Positions 1 to 10,115 of a stretch of DNA of 10,115 bases are shown here, in pieces. A model generated the notes under the pieces. That model ran no database searches. It was not told the origin of the DNA and saw only the letters and a program-made list of their open reading frames with translations. The translations under genes were made by a program, and so were the position numbers. The DNA is taken from assembly GCF_000143415.4 (NCBI RefSeq), contig NW_003314599.1, positions 1 to 10,115 of the forward strand, written 5' to 3'. This DNA comes from Selaginella moellendorffii (Eukaryota; Plantae; Lycopodiophyta). Every line of letters begins with the position of its first letter. The stretch's first letter is position 1.

Positions 1-1040
1 CAGCCATACTTACTTCTGCCACTGCTTCCTGGCAAGATAAATGTTTTGGATGTGGACTGGAAATGCGTTCAGTCTCTCACACCTCCATCAATAGTCTCAG
101 ACAACGATGACGAAAGTGTTCTACATTTTGCAAATTATTCATTGCGAGCTACAGATATCAAAGCAGGACTGATTCTTACAAAGCACACCAGGAAACCGTT
201 ATTTTATTCTCATCTGGGTGTTCTCGAAGAAATGACGGCGCAGAGCTCGTTTTTCAATCACAACTATAATACGTATTCCGACTACTTTCTGGAAGTGTAA
301 GACTTGTTAGTTTCTTCTTCGCTCTGATTGGAACACGCGACTTACAGACATAATGTCAAACTGCAATATCCAGCCCAACCACTTCTAAAAGTGAACAACT
401 TGCCTGGCAATGTGCACAACTATTTACTGCCCCGTTCAACAGACTTGCCAAGCGCGTCGAATGGCATATCGACTAACAAGCTGCCACCCGAACTTTGCAT
501 TCTCTTACAACCAGAAGTTGACTACTCCATTGTGGTGTCTGTGATGGTCCTGCCTTCAGTCATCTACCGGTTACAATGTCTAAGTTCTGCTGCACAGCTA
601 ACGAAACTCGTGGGGATCCACATATCTACAACCACGGTAAAAAGTTCGTTTTATTATTTTCATTGTTTGTTTGTTTGTTTTTTTCTGCAGATGTTGATGG
701 CACTGACTGCTGCGAGCTGTAATGAAGGCTTTTCTCTTGAGAGACTCGAGCTTTTAGGCGACTCATTCCTCAAATTTGCACTGAGCTTCCACTTGGTCTC
801 TGAATTTCCAGAAGAACGAGAAGGCTTTCTTTCACAAAAGCGTCAAGAGCAGATCTCTAACAGCAATTTGCACAGGCTTGGTGTACAAAGAAGATTGGTG
901 GTAAGCATGCAATAATATGTTTCTAGTCTCTTCAACAGAACTTACAGACGTACATCAGAGATGGGCAGTTTGAGCCAACGGATTGGATTGCACCGGTCCC
1001 TTGCTCTTCTTTGGCAAGTCACGAAAAGATTTTAGGACGG
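1..1040 (+). repeat. Direct duplication: 1-~1040 matches 9058-~10112 (initial offset 9057 bp), introns included
   Basis: Near-identical sequence by direct comparison; intron 297-347 is identical to 9354-9404. Confidence 0.97.
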
Positions 1041-2811
1041 AAGTTATGTGACAAAGGTCATCGTTGGCTGCGAAGAAAATCTGTTGCAGATGTAATGGAG
1101 GCCATCATCGGTGCATACATTACTGACAACTCCGCTGATGCTGCCTATCACTTCATGACCTGGGCAGGATTTAAGCTGGTTGACAGGTGTTTAGTACCTG
1201 TGTTCTCATGCCAAGCTTCTGAAGTTGACGATATCTGCAATCTAGAAAAGATAATCGGCTATACCTTTCGGAACAAATGCTTCCTTGTTGAAGCGTTCAC
1301 TCATGCTTCTTCCAGCGTTCGATCATATCAGGTAGACGAGTAAGTTTTGGAGCTGGACTAACACTGGTTAGTTGTCAGCGGCTGGAGTATTTAGGCGATG
1401 CTGTCCTGGATTACCTTATCGTTCTTCATCTTTATGCGAGCTATCCCAACTTGCAACCGGGACTTCTCAGTGATCTCAAGGCTGCTACAGTAAACAACGT
1501 TTGGTTCGCTTTCGTTGCTGTGCGCCACAACTTTCACAAGTATCTGCGTCACAACCATAAGAAAGAGATTGACGAGTATCTCCTGAACAAAAATGTGCAA
1601 TGTTTCGAGGACTGGAAGCTTGAGCAACCGCCAAAGGTCAGTCTCTGAGCTTTTAAAGTTTGTCCTCCTCCTGACGCTTGTCTCTTTTTCTTTTGCAGTG
1701 TCTCAGTGATTTAGTGGAATCTCTCGCGGGAGCTTTGTTATTTGATACGGGTGGTAATCTGGAAATAGTGTGGAGCATATTGGAGCCCCTTCTTCGCCCG
1801 ATAGCCAGTCTCGAGAGCTTGGCACTTCACCCAGTCCAAGAGCTTCAGGAGCTATGCCAGCTGAAAGAAATTTCAGCTCCAAGCTACAACGTTGGAACTT
1901 GCTCGGTGACATTGGCAGACGGAGGCTTAGTCACAGGACAAGGCTCCGGAGGAGCAAACAAAAAGCTTCTCAAGAAGCAGTCTTCTGCCGATGCCTTGGA
2001 AAAACTGAAGGTAATAACAAGTTATGCTCCGAAAACGTTAGAGTTTTTCTTTTTATATTCAGGCTTTGGGATTTCAACACCCACGGCACGAACTCCTTCA
2101 TGCTATTCAGGCCGAGACACACATAGAGGCCTCAAAGGTCATCATAAACAACGGTTTGAACTTCAGTGTCCCCGTCGTTACACAGTGCATTGCATCCTTC
2201 GTACCACCAATGTCGAGCTCGAGTTCTTCTACAGAATCGGATCTATTTCGGCAGGAAAGTCTTCCTCCAGACCATGACTTGCCTTCCGATTTAGAACTTG
2301 TCGACACTGAACACGAGTCAGATGTTCTAGCAGCATCACTTGCGGAAGAGTTAGGTCTCGACGATGATCTCCTCGAGAAGCTTTGCAGTGCTACAGCTTC
2401 GTCTACTGTTCCTCCTAGACACGGTAAAAGCTATTTCATGTTTCTATCCTTAAGATTTGTGTTTTCTTTCCAGAAGGTGGTGGCAGTGATTCTTTTGTTG
2501 CTGGAGCTCCACGAGCAGAGCTTCAAATTCTCTGCCAAAAGAGACGGTGGCCGGATCCCGAGTACATTATTTGCGAGGAGAGTGGTCCTCCTCACATGAA
2601 ACAGTAAGAAAAGAAAAGAAAAGAATGAAACTCCTAATCCTGCTGATTGTTGTTTTTTTTTTCATCTTGTAGTTTTGCTTTGGCTGTGACAATCAGTTTT
2701 CCAATCGATGGACCCGTGACATTTTATGGAGAGCCCCAGCGAGACATGAAGCGGGCCAAAGACTCAGCAGCCAACGCTGCCATCGCTTATTTGAAAAAGC
2801 TCCTTTCATGA
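1..2811 (+). CDS. DCL: Dicer-like endoribonuclease, DCL2/DCL4-like, copy A; 5'-partial and spliced. Exons <1-296, 348-636, 691-900, 948-1331, 1379-1636, 1699-2010, 2063-2423, 2474-2603, 2673-2811 (TGA)
   Basis: Manual splicing at GT-AG sites keeps one open frame through all 8 introns. Motifs: PAZ (TYSDYFLEV|HNVKLQYPAQPLLKV); connector helix (LPPELC..LPSVIYRL); RNase IIIa (SLERLELLGDSFLKF..ADVMEAIIGA); RNase IIIb (EAFTHAS..YQ|RLEYLGDAVLDYL..PK|CLSDLVESLAGA); dsRBD1 (HPVQELQELCQ..NKKLLKKQSSADALEKL); dsRBD2 (PRAELQILCQKRRWPDPEY..GPPHMKH..KRAKDSAANAAIAYL). All four acidic catalytic residues are present in each RNase III domain. DCL2 versus DCL4 is not resolved. Confidence 0.95.
297..2672 (+). other. 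Eight short spliceosomal introns of copy A: 297-347, 637-690, 901-947, 1332-1378, 1637-1698, 2011-2062, 2424-2473, 2604-2672
   Basis: GT donors and YAG acceptors; lengths 51, 54, 47, 47, 62, 52, 50 and 69 bp; each junction restores a conserved Dicer motif in frame. Confidence 0.85.
663..684 (+). repeat. (TTTG)n microsatellite in intron 2, with length variants at ~4592-4626 (reverse strand) and ~9720-9747
   Basis: Visible tandem TTTG/CAAA units; the intron is 54, 66 and 69 bp in copies A, B and C. Confidence 0.85.
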
Positions 2812-2819
2812 TTTCTTGC

Positions 2820-3505
2820 GGCATCATCCAGTGGCTACAAGGTGAGACGAGAATACTTCTAGATGACTATATGGCTGATTTTTCTCTTCTTCTTTCTCCC
2901 TTGGAGCCTCATTTGATACAATCTAGTGATCACTTCCTCCGGTAAGCTAAGCTTTCATCGCAATGAGTTTAATGAGTTACGTGACAATAGTTTGATCTTT
3001 CGTGAGCAATGGCGTGCATTGAGGTGGCGCCAGCTGCCGCGAGCGATCCATTCTCTTGCAAAGACGAAGGTGCCACTGCTGTTGCTACAAATCTTCTTCC
3101 CCTGCCTCCGGAGTTCGTGGATTTTCTTCTCGGGCAGATTGTTCTACCACGCGGCTCAAATGCTGCGTTACTTCAGGTACTAGAACTCGGGATTCCTTTT
3201 CTTTGTTTGATTGGATTGCCAGAGTAAAGCCGTGGGGAGTTAGTGAAAGAACTTGAGATCAAAGTCGAGCCTGTTTCTTGGCTATGTTTCCAGTGTTCTC
3301 ACTGGCATCGTCCAGTGCCTACAAGTCTGGAAAGGTGAGAAAATATGAAAAAAAAAATAAAAAATCGAGAACTCTTGTTTGTTTCATTTTCTCGACAGAT
3401 TTACGGTATGGATGCGGCCTCCGGGGCTGCTGTTGCAGCACCTGATATACAATCCGGTGATCACATGTGCAGCTCCTGGTAAGCGAAGCTTTCATTGCAG
3501 TTTAT
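2820..3505 (+). repeat. Diverged direct duplication downstream of the copy A stop (2820-2970 vs 3304-3505), with splice-site-like signals
   Basis: ggcatcatccagtggctacaag..gtgaga (2820-2847) vs ggcatcgtccagtgcctacaag..gtgaga (3304-3340); gtgatcac..ggtaagctaagctttcatcgca (2926-2962) vs gtgatcac..ggtaagcgaagctttcattgca (3457-3499). Confidence 0.7.
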
Positions 3506-3693
3506 GGGAGTTCTTTCAACTTGTATGCAGAGGTTTTGGTGTGGGGGCTGGAACACTAACATGAGTTGATATTTCTCGCTATCGCCTAGCATCCTGTCAG
3601 ACCATGCTCCAAAAGTATGGGTTTGGTAGTCGAGTGAGGCTTTTTTTTGCCAATGGGACAATGGTTTCCATCTTGCCAGCATAAAAAACAACT

Positions 3694-3809
3694 CTTTCTC
3701 GGGTTTATCTCGGATTTTCTCTCGGACTGCATCTCAAACTCTTTTTCGAGTCCATCTTGGACTCTTTCTTGAATATATCTCAAATTCCTTCTTAAACTCT
3801 ATTTTAACA
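3694..3809. repeat. Degenerate ~23-bp minisatellite, about 5 units
   Basis: Units: ctttctcgggtttatctcggatt / ttctctcggactgcatctcaaact / ctttttcgagtccatcttggact / ctttcttgaatatatctcaaatt / ccttcttaaactctattttaac. Confidence 0.6.
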
Positions 3810-4181
3810 ATTTTATATGTCATGTGTTAGTCCTCTTGTGTCTATTTTTTAGAGACTCATTTACAACTTGCTTTGTGCTCGTTCCTTAAGCATTTTATTG
3901 GGAATTCCATTCATACTCTCAACTATCCAAGTCAGAGTTTTAGTTGAAACATATTACACTCATTTGGCTTCAATTTCAACCATTATTATGTGGCACACTT
4001 TTGACTTTACTTTAGGGGTTAGGGATTTGTGTTTCACATGACATACATGATAAATTATTATCTATCAAATATTGAGGGACTAAACTTAATATCATGGGGG
4101 TTATTGTCAATCTAGTGTAAAACAAAGCAAAAGAAAATTAAAAACTATGCTTAATAAGAAACACATATGAGTTCTTATAAC

Positions 4182-5272
4182 TTCCATTACATCTATAACC
4201 AATTTTCTACAATAACCTTTATCACATAACTTCCATCCTAAAATCTTTTTGTGACTGGCCAAAGAAGAGCAAAGGACCAGTGCAATCCAATCTGTTGGCT
4301 CAAACTGCCCATCTCTAATGTACATTTGTAAGTTCTGTTGAAGAAATTAGAAACATATTATTGCATGCTTACCACCAATCCTCTTTGTACACCAAGCCTG
4401 TGCAAATTGGTGTTAGAGATCTGCTCTTGATGCTTTTATGAAAGAAATCATTCTTTCACAAAAAGAATGAAATTCAGAGACCAAGTGGAAGCTCAGTGCA
4501 AATTTGAGGAATGAATCACCTAAAAGCTCGAGTCTCTTGAGAGAAAAGCCTTCATTACAGCTCGCAGCAGTCAGTGCCATCAACATCTGCAGAAAAACAA
4601 AAACAAACAAACAAACAAACAAACAATGAAAATAATAAAACGAACTTTTTACTGTGGTTGTAGATATGTGGATGCCCATGAGTTTCATCAGCTGTGCAGC
4701 AGAACTTAGACATTGTAGCCGGTAGATGACTGAAGGCAGGACCATCACANNNNNNNNNNNNNNNNNNNNNNNNNNNNNNNNNNNNNNNNNNNNNNNNNNN
4801 NNNNNNNNNNNNNNNNNNNNNNNNNNNNNNNNNNNNNNNNNNNNNNNNNNNNNNNNNNNNNNNNNNNNNNNNNNNNNNNNNNNNNNNNNNNNNNNNNNNN
4901 NNNNNNNNNNNNNNNNNNNNNNNNNNNNNNNNNNNNNNNNNNNNNNNNNNNNNNNNNNNNNNNNNNNNNNNNNNNNNNNNNNNNNNNNNNNNNNNNNNNN
5001 NNNNNNNNNNNNNNNNNNNNNNNNNNNNNNNNNNNNNNNNNNNNNNNNNNNNNNNNNNNNNNNNNNNNNNNNNNNNNNNNGGCAGAAGTAAGTATGCCTG
5101 GAGATGTGACCATCGTCACCACGGAGCCGCTGTCCTCCATGGATGATTGAGAACTTCCCTGATCCAAGAGATAAGTTCGCCATCTTCAACTAGTCATAGA
5201 TACTTGCTTTGATGGTTTGTCTCTCTGGGCCTCAGCAGTGACCATAATGGGCTTGAGATTGCCGAATTAGAT
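4182..5272 (-). pseudogene. Inverted DCL pseudogene fragment (copy B)
   Basis: Reverse complement of 4182-4749 matches A ~540-1100 (exon 2 end, intron, exon 3, intron, exon 4 start). Reverse complement of 5081-5272 matches C 8114-8240 joined to C 9028-9077. Lesions: +4 frameshift near 4448-4468, intron-3 acceptor CAG>CAA, 3' truncation and many CG>TG/CA changes. Confidence 0.93.
4750..5080. other. Assembly gap (331 N) inside copy B
   Basis: Run of N. The flanks map to A positions 540 and 20, so about 519 bp of PAZ-region sequence would be expected if B is colinear. Confidence 0.99.
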
Positions 5273-5559
5273 TGCAACTTCGCAAAATCCCTCTAAAGAA
5301 GCATATGGCAAGGATTTCAGAAGTGGATAATGCTCAGTAATTATGCGGAAAGCACCAATGGATCATAGAAAGTACCAAGTGGAGGATGAAACATGGATCA
5401 TGGAGGAGATCATCTGGAGTTTTGCTATAGAGAAATGAAGTGTAAATTTTTTTTACCTCCTTGTTAGTGTTGATGGAGCATTTCATGGTACTCTACAGAA
5501 GTGTTGAGGGCTGTATTGTCCCCAAATAATTGGTGTTAGACTCTCTTCTCACATGGCAT

Positions 5560-6569
5560 GTATCTCTGTAGGTGCAACTCTGGATGTAGTTGCCAACAAC
5601 GAGCTATACTGTGTGACTAAACCTTGCACTCCTCACATCAACAAAGCTGTCATTGAAAGTAGTCCTATGCAACCATTTTCAGTGCTCAGAGTTTCTCCAT
5701 GAGCTTACTTTGTTGCTTTTACAGTTGTTGAAAGATCACTCTGTACTCCTTGAACTCAGCTAAGGTGGACTCAATTGTGGCAAGAATTTTCTTGGTGACT
5801 AGCTCAGTGAAAAGGGACTAGGAAGGGTCCTTGAACAAGCTTCTTAATGAATGAGATATCAAGCTTATGGAACATCTCTAACTCAAGCTCCACAGCATAT
5901 GTGTAGGCATCATAGCATCATTAGTGGCAATGTTTGGTGACTTTCCTTTAGAGCCTAGGCTTGAAGCCTTATACAAAAGTTGACACTCCGATGGACTCTT
6001 CCTGTGTCACTCTTTTATCAAAGCAGATCTCTCGAAATGCTTGTGTGTTGTATAGTCAAAGGTAAACTCATTTGCATTTTGCCAAAATTAGAACAAGTCT
6101 TGGAGTTGTTATATGGGAACTTCTTGAGAGAATGTGCTTTTGAATGTATGGAAGAGAGTGTCAAAGTCCCACTTCTCCTTAGCCTCCAGTGCAAGTACCC
6201 ATTGCCATACATGTCTATGTATTGAACACCTCATACTTTGTCACATCGTCCATAATTTGATTGTTGGCACAATAAGAAGAAAATGTTGCAAAATGATCCT
6301 CCACTAAAATGCCTATCCTTAGCTCAAAAAAAGGGACCGTGCTAAAGCAAATGCACCATTGGCATGGGTGGCAAAGGTGGTAGAGATTGCTGAGCCATTC
6401 TTAGTTGATTTGTAATGACTGGTTGGTACTTAGGATCTTTAGGGATATCTCTTGGCTTTGCTAGAGGTGGTGGATCTACAGCTTGATAAAAAATTTGAGG
6501 TAGGGAGGCACCATATGAATCTATTAACTTGGTATCTGCATCAAATGGTAAATCCTCACTCTCTAACAA
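5560..6569 (-). mobile_element. Degenerate LTR-retrotransposon gag remnant (probably Ty3/gypsy-type); boundaries approximate
   Basis: Minus-strand translation gives VWQWVLALEAKEKWDFDTLFHTFKSTFSQEVPI*QLQDLF*FWQNANEFTFDY (~6210-6052; retrotransposon Gag pattern), then TFV*GFKPRL*RKV..DAYTYAVELE, then a CX2CX4HX4C knuckle CEECKV*SHSIARCWQLHP at 5637-5581. Multiple stops and CpG depletion. No pol or paired LTRs found. Confidence 0.75.
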
Positions 6570-7638
6570 AGTAGTATGATAGTCCAGCTCTCATTAAAGC
6601 TAGAGAAATTTCCATGTACATAGGGAGTTGAGAGAGAACTAAGAAGTAAACACTTGTTTATACTCCTTGTATGCACGGGCATGATATATGCAAGTTACAA
6701 CAAATGCCCAGTCACGGAATAAGTCTGGAGGTAACCCCAAGCAAAAAATAAACTGCTTGTGACAGTAAAACACTTGCCACATGGTCTAAAATGCACAAGA
6801 AAATGCCCAAAAATGCCTCAGCACTCACTCCATAATTAAGAATTTGAAAAAATGACCTCCTTCTAATTAAATGTTGCTCAAACAAAGGAAAAACAAAATA
6901 ATTATAAAGGGTATTCACTCACAAGCACTCTTCTAAGGTTTGAAACAAAATTTATGATAAAAAATTTGTGGCAAAATCAAAGAAAAAATAAAACCCTTCC
7001 TCACAACCTAAACAAAAAAATACCTTGGCAAAAAAACATGTTCAAACTCACTACCTAGAGTATAAGAATTGATGAGAGTAGATGCAAAGGAAGCCTAGTA
7101 CTATGTGGAAACTTTTTCTAAAAGTAACTTTAACAAAACACTTGAAGAAATTAACTCAATTCTCTCGATCATGGCAAGTGCTTACATCAATAGAAAAACA
7201 CAGCAAATCTTGAAGCATAAATATTGCAAATGTGATTGCAGATATCAAAAATTATATGTTAACAAGTCTTTTTAGATATTCTTTATTTACTACTATGATT
7301 GATATTGTTAGTTCTCTTTTTAATCCCTTTTGCTTAAATATTAATAAATTAGGCTTAACATCTATACTTAACCAAATGAACATAAGGACTTCTTTTGCTT
7401 CCTTTCTTGTGATTTGACACTGGGGCTATGTGTAGAGGTCAGAGAGATAAGTCTGCCAAGTCCTGGCCATGCACAAAGACCGGCTTGTGCTTGTGTGTTT
7501 CGCCAGTTTGTCGCTAAAATCACCAAGAAACGAATGCCAAACGAACAAATCTTATAATCACAGTTCTCTACCTTCGCGAGACTCCCAAGGTTCTATCGTT
7601 CTAGCTTTAGCATTATCACCATTGGATGTACTGTGCAG

Positions 7639-8445
7639 TGCTCTCCAAAATGGACACTAAAGCCCGAGCATTTCGTGGAAGGAACACTCTTCAAGAAAGA
7701 AGAAAATTATGAGTATGGTTTTTTATCCACTGCTAATATGAAGGTCAGCTTTGATAATTGTCGTTTCACAATGTCAGGGTGGTGTGGTGTATTCTCGTCG
7801 TTTGCATTTTCACGAGCTTTCCGGTTGATCTAGGAGACACCTTACAGCGTCAATGAACCCCAAACAGGCGTGAAAAGTTTTAAGAACCTTGATCGAACTT
7901 TTGATCAGCAGATGCTGTTGCGAAGTTGACAGCTATGGCTGGAGAGAACCTCTCCACTTGTTGCTTGAGATGGTTGAACCAGAAAGAGCGTATCAATCGG
8001 TGCTGGATGCAGCCACAGATGATGAGTCTGTGTTCTCTATCATAAGAGAGGCCATGCACGCTAAAGTGATAGTGGATCCAACTAAAGCGGTCCTCGACAC
8101 CTACGAATCCACTATCTGATTCGGCAATCTTGAGCCCATTGTGATCACTGCTGAGGCCCGGAGAGACAAACCATCAAAGCAAGTACCTGTGACGAGTTGA
8201 AGATGGCGAACTTATCTGGCGGACAGCGGCTCCGTGGCGAAGAAGTCTTCACAAAGAATGTCCACAGGTAGGCTGATGCTCTCTCCAGTGCCGGATGAAT
8301 TTAATAAGGAAAGATGAAAACGGTTTTCATACGCAGCTTCGATCTGTCAGAATCTACGACGTTAGCGTCCTAGGGTTTCACTGTTCGTCCAGCAATCGGC
8401 TCAGTTCAATCGACTCAAGCTCCAATCGTAGCTGAATCTGCGCAG
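7639..8445 (+). other. Non-Dicer, exon-like fragments of unknown origin upstream of copy C
   Basis: CpG-retaining sequence with plausible GT-AG introns (7744-7833, 8268-8336, 8446-8492) and short ORFs (7633-7833, 7889-8119). No DExD/H helicase motifs; in-frame stops; 8114-8240 is shared with copy B. Confidence 0.4.
8371..8378. promoter_or_regulatory. Possible telo-box (TAGGGTTT, reverse complement AAACCCTA)
   Basis: Exact 8-mer about 300 bp upstream of ATG 8675. Plant telo-boxes occur near TSS/5'UTRs, but a single 8-mer may be chance. Confidence 0.25.
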
Positions 8446-8514
8446 GTAACGAAGATCGGTTTTCTAGAGTTAATGTAGCCTGAAAATCTTAGCTATCATA
8501 CATTTCTATTCGAG

Positions 8515-10115
8515 AAAATTGCTTGCCTGGAAGCTTGTCGAAAGCTACACACTACTGGGCTTCTATCAGATAAATTGCATCCAGTTCCTGCTACTAGGAT
8601 CTCCAATACTGCCTCAATGACTTCAGGTGTGTTGAATCCACTAACGTTTTCTTGAAGTAATCACGTTATATTAGATGGATATGTACGAGACCATCATACC
8701 TGATGTTTTCCAAGGACTGGTTTCTGAAAATCTGACCTTCCACACCTACGTACTTTCTTTTAGCGCCAGTGACGACAGGTTCTCCTATCGTAACCTTGCG
8801 CTGTTCTTGCCATCAAAGTTGGATGCCTCCCTCAAAAATGGAAGCTTCGAACTGGATTTGGGACGTGGAAGAAATGCTGTGGTTCGGCTTGGCTCGATGC
8901 AAAATATCAGCTTAGACAGTGATAAGGTAAGGATTTTGTCGCTTTTGTGGATAATGTTTTGACTTATGCTCTGCTTTTCAAGGTTGCTGCCGGAAATCAG
9001 TTCTACGAGAAACTTTTTTCTACTTTATGGCGACGACGGCTACCTCCAATCCATCTCCAGCCATACTTACTTCTGCCACTGCTTCCTGGCAAGATAAATG
9101 TTTTGGATGTGGACTGGAAATGCGTTCAGTCTCTCACACCTCCATCAATAGTCTCAGACAACGATGACGAAAGTGTTCTACATTTTGCAAATTATTCATT
9201 GCGAGCTACAGATATCAAAGCAGGACTGATTCTTACAAAGCACACCAGGAAACCGTTATTTTATTCTCATCTGGGTGTTCTTGAAGAAATGACGGCGCAG
9301 AGCTCGTTTTTCAATCGCAACTATAATACGTATTCCGACTACTTTCTGGAAGTGTAAGACTTGTTAGTTTCTTCTTCGCTCTGATTGGAACACGCGACTT
9401 ACAGACATAATGTCAAACTGCAATATCCAGCCCAACCACTTCTAAAAGTGAGCAACTTGCCTGGCAATGTGCACAACTATTTACTGCCCCGTTCAACAGA
9501 CTTGTCAAGCGCGTCGAATGGCATATCGACTAACAAGCTGCCACCCGAACTTTGCATTCTCTTACAACCAGAAGTTGACTGCTCCATTGTGGTGTCTGTG
9601 ATGGTCCTGCCTTCAGTCATCTACCGGCTACAATGTCTAAGTACTGCTGCGCAGCTGACGAAACTCGTGGGCATCCACATATCTACAACCACGGTAAAAA
9701 GTTCGTTTTATTATTTTCATTGTTTGTTTGTTTGTTTGTTTGTTTTTCTTTTTTCCCTGCAGATGTTGATGGCACTGACTTCTGCAAGCTGTAATGAAGG
9801 CTTTTCTCTCGAGAGACTCGAGCTTTTAGGCGATGCATTCCTCAAATTTGCACTGAGCTTGCACTTGGTCTCTGAATATCCGGAACAACAAGAAGGCTTT
9901 CTTAGTCAAAATCGTCAAGAGCAGATCTCTAACAGCAATTTGCACAGGCTTGGTGTACAAACAGGATTGGTGGTAAGCATGCAATAATATGTTTCTAGTC
10001 TCTTAAACAGAACTTACAGACGTACATCAGAGACGGGCAGTTTGAGCCAAAGGATTGGATTGCACCGGTCCCTTGCTCTTCTTTGGTCAGTCACGCAAAA
10101 ATTATAGACGGTACC
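8515..10115 (+). CDS. DCL: Dicer-like copy C: end of DUF283, platform, PAZ and start of RNase IIIa; apparently 5'-truncated and runs off the window; may be a pseudogene. Exons ~8515-8626/8628, 8675-8926, 8983-9353, 9405-9693, 9763-9972, 10020->10115
   Basis: KIACLEACRKLHTTGLLSDKLHP (DUF283 C-terminal helix); MDMYETIIPDVF..FELDLGRGRNAVVRL..FYEKLFSTL..YLLLPL (platform); PAZ almost identical to A; SLERLELLGDAFLKF. The frame is open from ATG 8675 to the window end after splicing 8927-8982, 9354-9404, 9694-9762 and 9973-10019. Confidence 0.85.

Follow-up and report, generated by a model that had tools for sequence, protein, structure and literature searches.

Inverted repeats of protein-coding genes can silence their paralogs in plants: at Arabidopsis PAI1-PAI4 (Ws) and soybean CHS I, methylation or silencing affects the two arms as well as unlinked copies, and small RNAs have been documented. 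According to the model of Allen et al. 2004, MIRNA and hairpin small interfering RNA (siRNA) loci reportedly arise by inverted duplication of target-gene sequence. Silencing genes are themselves placed under feedback control, as in the miR168-AGO1 loop. The same principle operates in the control of DCL1 by miR162 (PMC4429486). Duplicated (non-processed) pseudogene fragments, some of which yield small RNAs, have been surveyed in rice (PMC2708354), and the genome of the lycophyte Selaginella moellendorffii contains thousands of tandem duplicates (PMC5750206). Here we describe a 10,115-bp S. moellendorffii scaffold, analyzed over its whole length (the window), that contains a tandem pair of Dicer-like paralogs, A and C, with a partial Dicer-like sequence, B, in the opposite orientation, so that the three copies are laid out +/-/+. 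Our analysis indicates that B is probably an ordinary duplication scar, an inverted and partial DNA copy of the neighboring gene A that is no longer functional.

The window is an entire orphan scaffold consisting of two contigs joined across 331 N, each uninterrupted: 1-4749, with A, a spacer and the 3′ part of B, and 5081-10115, with the 5′ part of B and C. Both scaffold ends lie inside the repeated gene. A sequence-only reading of this DNA had placed convergent inverted arms at about 540-1100 (+) and 4182-4749 (-), separated by about 3.1 kb, with B starting about 1.4 kb after the A stop and inverted relative to C. These arms are real. When the window was compared with itself by blastn, A 540-1099 (+) matched B 4749-4183 (-) at 88.2% identity over 578 columns, 29 of them gap columns; the two arms are convergent, 3,083 nt lie between them, and B starts 1,371 nt past the A stop codon (2809-2811). 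In the same comparison, B 4238-4749 matched C 10107-9597 in inverted orientation at 89.0% identity, and A 1-1040 matched C 9058-10111 in direct orientation at 95.2% identity, with a period of 9,057. A separate repeat search of the window recovered the same arms in pieces. The same reading had also expected B to be longer through the gap, correctly, since it resumes at 5081-5272 with strand and order unchanged. Its description of B as an inverted copy of the gene itself holds for the derivation from A but not for the extent, B being only a fragment. The features of the locus are collected in Table 1.

Table 1. Features of the S. moellendorffii scaffold, in window coordinates (o/e, observed/expected ratio; a point marks a feature without strand).
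Feature	Position	Strand	Remarks
Gene A: 3′ two thirds of a Dicer-like gene	1-2811	+	5′ end cut by scaffold start
Arm A of the inverted repeat	540-1099	+	PAZ-RNase IIIa connector and first half of RNase IIIa, with introns 637-690 and 901-947
A 3′ flank, normal CpG (o/e 0.6-0.85)	2812-3900	+	3′ untranslated region (3′UTR) or unrecognised small gene
AT-rich CpG-depleted block	3900-7500 (about)	.	CpG o/e 0.00-0.20 outside B; sharp edges; contains B
B, 3′ part: inverted pseudogene fragment	4183-4749	-	equivalent of A 540-1099, both introns kept
Scaffold gap, 331 N, inside B	4750-5080	.	expected content: equivalent of A 21-539 (519 nt)
B, 5′ part: three collinear patches	5081-5272	-	5081-5106 matches C 9052-9077 (= A 1-20); 5113-5139 matches C 8217-8243; 5169-5272 matches C 8114-8217 (91%)
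Gene C: tandem paralog of A	8675-10115	+	3′ end cut by scaffold end

B is collinear with its parent from the equivalent of C 8114 to A 1099, where it breaks off mid-exon; it is truncated at both ends, and weak similarity continues past the 5′ part to about 5308. Position 4749 is the edge of the N gap and no biological end. The stretch C 8244-9051 (about 808 nt), where the likely start-codon exon lies, has no counterpart in B. Its lesions comprise a 4-nt insertion, which shifts the frame, beside a scrambled 17-nt stretch, a 9-nt deletion, two stops in the frame of A, and a change of the intron-2 acceptor from AG to AA (4326-4327). The scramble repeats the next 15 nt in inverted orientation and so forms a small palindrome at 4433-4465, which looks like a template-switch (quasi-palindrome) mutation. 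Given the mid-exon end, the missing start exon, the insertion, the stops, the deletion and the lost acceptor, B is unable to encode a Dicer. Both introns of the arm region are retained, demonstrating a DNA-level copy, and an origin as a retrocopy was rejected on this ground. Homology to the parent that includes introns, disabling lesions and an absence of codon-position bias, the properties of a duplicated pseudogene fragment, are thus all found in B.

Two further candidate explanations of B were considered and set aside. The idea that B might be the 3′ end of a functional gene on the minus strand was rejected because of the stops, the frameshift and the lack of any coding match upstream; capture by a transposon was unsupported, with no terminal inverted repeats around B and no transposable-element protein domain in the block. 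Separately, the (GTTT)n microsatellite in intron 1 (661-680, 4596-4626 and 9718-9745) varies in length among the copies, A having the shortest version and B and C longer ones.

The lineage from which B was copied was assessed at amino-acid sites by rooting A, B and C with three paralogs from other scaffolds (P0004, P0155 and P0156). A and B share derived states at 5 sites, compared with 1 and 0 for the other pairings. The rooted sites indicate that the A lineage was the source of B and that, in this segment, A and C had already separated when B was copied.

We then compared the substitutions of the three copies over A 540-1034. B carries 27 private substitutions, nine of them inside the scramble; outside it, 17 of 18 are C>T or G>A, ten at CpG, compared with only 3 of 22 on the C side (Fisher 4e-7). 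Ancestral CpGs were lost at 10 of 14 sites in B, 1 of 14 in A and 2 of 14 in C. In B, C>T occurs as often as G>A, consistent with methylation on both strands. At most of the CpG sites retained in A and C, a silent change could have removed the CpG, indicating that selection on the protein is not the explanation for their retention. Private changes of B fall on codon positions 1, 2 and 3 in the ratio 7/9/7 and those of A in the ratio 2/1/5, although these numbers are small.

CpG depletion extends to the surroundings of B. A 300-nt CpG profile divided the window into two CpG-normal domains (1-3900 and 7500-10115, o/e about 0.6-0.9) and the depleted block, which spans 3.6 kb and has a G+C content of 30-41%. 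B lies about 280 nt or more inside the block edge and, with a CpG o/e of 0.20, is slightly less depleted than its surroundings, which fits a later arrival in DNA that was already methylated. CpG depletion is the property by which we read the block as a long-term methylated repeat or heterochromatin. Published methylomes of Selaginella show no gene-body methylation, with CG and CHG methylation confined to repeat-dense blocks beside unmethylated gene-rich tracts (PMC5750206, PMC5410703); both the decay profile of B and the block match this pattern.

Taken together, these observations are most simply accounted for by a duplication scar in the fast-duplicating Dicer-like cluster of S. moellendorffii. 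Genomic DNA of the A lineage, introns included, was copied backwards into what appears to have been an existing methylated, AT-rich intergenic block about 1.4 kb past the stop codon of A. The copying may have proceeded by template switching or by templated filler DNA at a break, a mechanism proposed because it fits both the patchwork of the B 5′ part and the small template-switch palindrome. B is without the start-codon exon and ends mid-exon. As its mutation pattern suggests, it would have been methylated like its surroundings and would since have decayed neutrally, mainly through deamination of methylated cytosines. If read-through RNA from the + strand of A were made, it would fold into an imperfect duplex of roughly 0.5-1.1 kb.

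Several points weigh against this account. The non-CpG C>T changes of B lie partly in the CHH context (7 CHH, 4 CHG), a context in which methylation is often siRNA-guided in flowering plants. The counts are small, with 14 CpGs and about 20 substitutions per lineage, and searches of the block for transposable-element domains and terminal inverted repeats found no recognisable transposon feature. In addition, the arms share perfect runs of up to 58 nt and many 21-mers match A and C, so that even accidental read-through would be expected to give active siRNAs.

The most probable of the alternatives, though itself unlikely, is the self-targeting foldback envisaged by the sequence-only reading: read-through RNA of A, containing sense A and antisense B, would fold back and be diced, and the resulting siRNAs would bring down A and C, and possibly further Dicer-like paralogs. 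The inverted arms of a plant hairpin siRNA locus are indeed present (88% identity over 578 columns, with a predicted duplex). A and B converge on one contig with no gap between them, and CpG-normal, possibly transcribed DNA reaches to about 3900, some 280 nt short of B. Treated as RNA, the arms form a very stable predicted duplex, with a pairing gain of -633 kcal/mol and 506 of 560 nt paired, compared with -10 to -28 for shuffled arms. Splicing of A would break this duplex at two introns, yet predicted pairing remains strong at -497 kcal/mol. Against the spliced A mRNA, 84 of the 547 21-mers of B match perfectly and 318 of 547 match with at most two mismatches, and PAI1-PAI4 and CHS I provide precedents for endogenous gene inverted repeats that silence paralogs.

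The pattern of decay leans in the other direction. B has decayed fast and neutrally, so complementarity to A has not been maintained, and B lies within a CpG-depleted, presumably silenced block. Since siRNAs of the hairpin would match A as well as B, RNA-directed methylation over the long term ought to have left its mark on A too; as a proxy for methylation of the targets, however, CpG decay shows that A kept 13 and C 12 of the 14 ancestral CpGs, as against 4 in B, a measure that is silent on post-transcriptional silencing. Such one-sided decay argues against trans-methylation of A and against a hairpin kept up over time. Occasional A-B read-through could still act purely at the post-transcriptional level, which would leave no trace in the DNA. 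Rfam identified no MIRNA or other known RNA family anywhere in the window, and the literature searched, including a 47-plant small-RNA atlas, gave no account of this locus. S. moellendorffii has no 24-nt small-RNA peak (PMC5569507). On balance, we regard the foldback pathway as an unlikely account of the locus, and detectable arm siRNAs from A-B read-through as likewise unlikely. The stronger version, a self-limiting Dicer cluster in which the foldback gives 21-22-nt siRNAs that trim A, C and perhaps P0004 and P0156, appears very unlikely.

A single complex event that gave rise to A, B and C together, with the middle copy inverted and B as old as the A/C split, is an improbable alternative to the duplication scar. 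The +/-/+ layout would suit such an event, and the synonymous distances in A 540-1034 look alike at first sight (A-C 0.142, A-B 0.139, B-C 0.106). The distances of B, however, are inflated by CpG decay: only 1 of its private changes falls outside both the C>T/G>A class and the scramble. The rooting moreover joins B to A by the 5 shared derived sites against 1 and 0, which speaks against an equal age of the three copies.

An assembly artefact, in which the inverted order is wrong and B is a real third copy lying elsewhere or otherwise oriented, is the least probable of the alternatives and very unlikely indeed: although the scaffold is an orphan of two contigs whose sole gap (331 N) falls inside B, both its ends lie within the repeated gene, and A 1-500 is 99-100% identical to C with the next 500 nt at 90-97%, a possible sign of read recruitment at a contig end, A, the unique 3.1-kb spacer and the B 3′ part share one uninterrupted contig, the B 5′ part and C share the other, the parts of B on either side of the gap lie on one strand and run in the right order, and a mutation pattern of its own shows that B is no misassembled mix of A and C reads.

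Gene A holds the end of PAZ, RNase IIIa, RNase IIIb and a pair of double-stranded RNA-binding domains (dsRBDs). Splice sites read from the sequence gave a model of nine exons (1-296, 348-636, 691-900, 948-1331, 1379-1636, 1699-2010, 2063-2423, 2474-2603 and 2673-2811) with the stop at 2809-2811. By tblastn, the annotated S. moellendorffii protein P0157 (610 aa, 'Dicer homolog 3b-like') maps to A 544-2808, and its end at 2808 confirms both the nine-exon reading and the stop. Homology searches were run exon by exon, with P0157 standing in for the spliced A product; the A exons were joined only for codon counts and k-mer matching. Pfam Ribonuclease_3 was found above the cut-off on open reading frames (ORFs) of the exons, whereas the PAZ match was weak and below the cut-off; the precomputed domains of P0157 are PF00636, PF14622, PF14709 and PF00035. 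The best solved-structure relative of A is Arabidopsis DCL3 (7vg2), and matches in the PDB also include DCL4, DCL1 and human Dicer. With PAZ, two RNase III domains and C-terminal dsRBD(s), the predicted products of A and C qualify as Dicer-like proteins.

An exhaustive protein search with an A exon ORF returned one close relative, P0004, a Dicer homolog of S. moellendorffii, and P0157 was recovered in turn by a word search with P0004. P0004 (911 aa, helicase-less) and P0156 (1510 aa, full-length Dicer-like) are encoded on the same 1.45-Mb S. moellendorffii scaffold, and a further close paralog, P0155, on a 3.9-Mb scaffold. The per-exon identities of A to these paralogs are mosaic: 2057-2422 is 90% identical to P0156 and 78% to P0004, while 1352-1636 is 90.5% identical to P0004 and 86% to P0156. 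This mosaic suggests gene conversion among members of a young Dicer-like cluster.

In gene C, the arm homologous to B spans 9597-10111, and homology to B further upstream begins at 8114. The tblastn alignment of C to P0004 begins at the ATG at 8675, which, by analogy with this helicase-less protein, is the likely start codon. Helicase coding sequence was not found upstream of C in the window, and nothing resembling residues 1-570 of P0156 occurs between 5081 and 8515, indicating that C, like P0004, is a copy without the helicase. C 8515-8637, which lies upstream of the likely start, resembles residues 570-610 of P0156. Identity between A and C steps near 500-540 from 99-100% (1-500 vs 9058-9557; synonymous divergence (dS) 0.009) to 90-97%, with a dS of 0.14 for A 540-1034 vs C 9597-10105. 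The step reflects either a recent gene-conversion tract or C reads recruited at the contig end, and leaves the arm itself untouched.

The spacer between A and B contains weak direct repeats that end in GT splice-like motifs (2820-2841/3304-3325 and 2916-2962/3447-3499). An ATG ORF at 3009-3227 has a coding-like composition; it gave no Pfam family and no homologue in the searches. From these features, the region 2812-3600 could be a spliced 3′UTR or an unannotated small gene.

At this locus, birth and death can be seen in progress within a Dicer-like cluster specific to Selaginella. The locus also offers a contrast that can be read from the genome itself: the dead copy in the presumably methylated block has gained a clean cytosine-deamination signature, and the active parent 3 kb away has not, which provides a usable sequence-only test for silenced versus active inverted-repeat arms in this genome. 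The private T/A variants of B would allow the source of each small-RNA read to be traced. Should the hairpin be made, the locus would represent a natural example of a Dicer gene that provides its own substrate, and a snapshot of the birth of a hairpin-siRNA or microRNA locus in a lycophyte with atypical small-RNA pathways.

Among the known systems, miR162-DCL1 and miR168-AGO1 resemble this locus in that a Dicer-like target would mean negative feedback on the silencing machinery; those loops, however, use conserved microRNAs with defined target sites, of which none is apparent at A-B. The long near-perfect arms and the inverted duplicate of a future target correspond to the first stage proposed in the Allen et al. 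2004 model, as reported, with the differences that one arm is a working gene, A, that the loop measures 3.1 kb, and that no promoter is dedicated to the foldback. The P0156/P0004 locus belongs to the same young lycophyte Dicer-like clade (A 78-95% identical per exon) and likewise shows local duplication with loss of parts, as in the A/B/C cluster, but it lies on a 1.45-Mb scaffold rather than on a 10,115-bp orphan. B also shares the character of the duplicated pseudogene fragments of rice, being an intron-bearing DNA copy that is truncated, frameshifted, neutral, near its parent and inverted; it differs in its unusually clean methyl-cytosine decay signature and its position inside a CpG-depleted block. 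With PAI1-PAI4 and CHS I, finally, the locus has in common the tail-to-tail arms of a protein-coding gene, from which read-through could in principle give double-stranded RNA acting on paralogs; in contrast to those loci, methylation-type decay is here found in the dead arm B only, and the parent arms have been spared.

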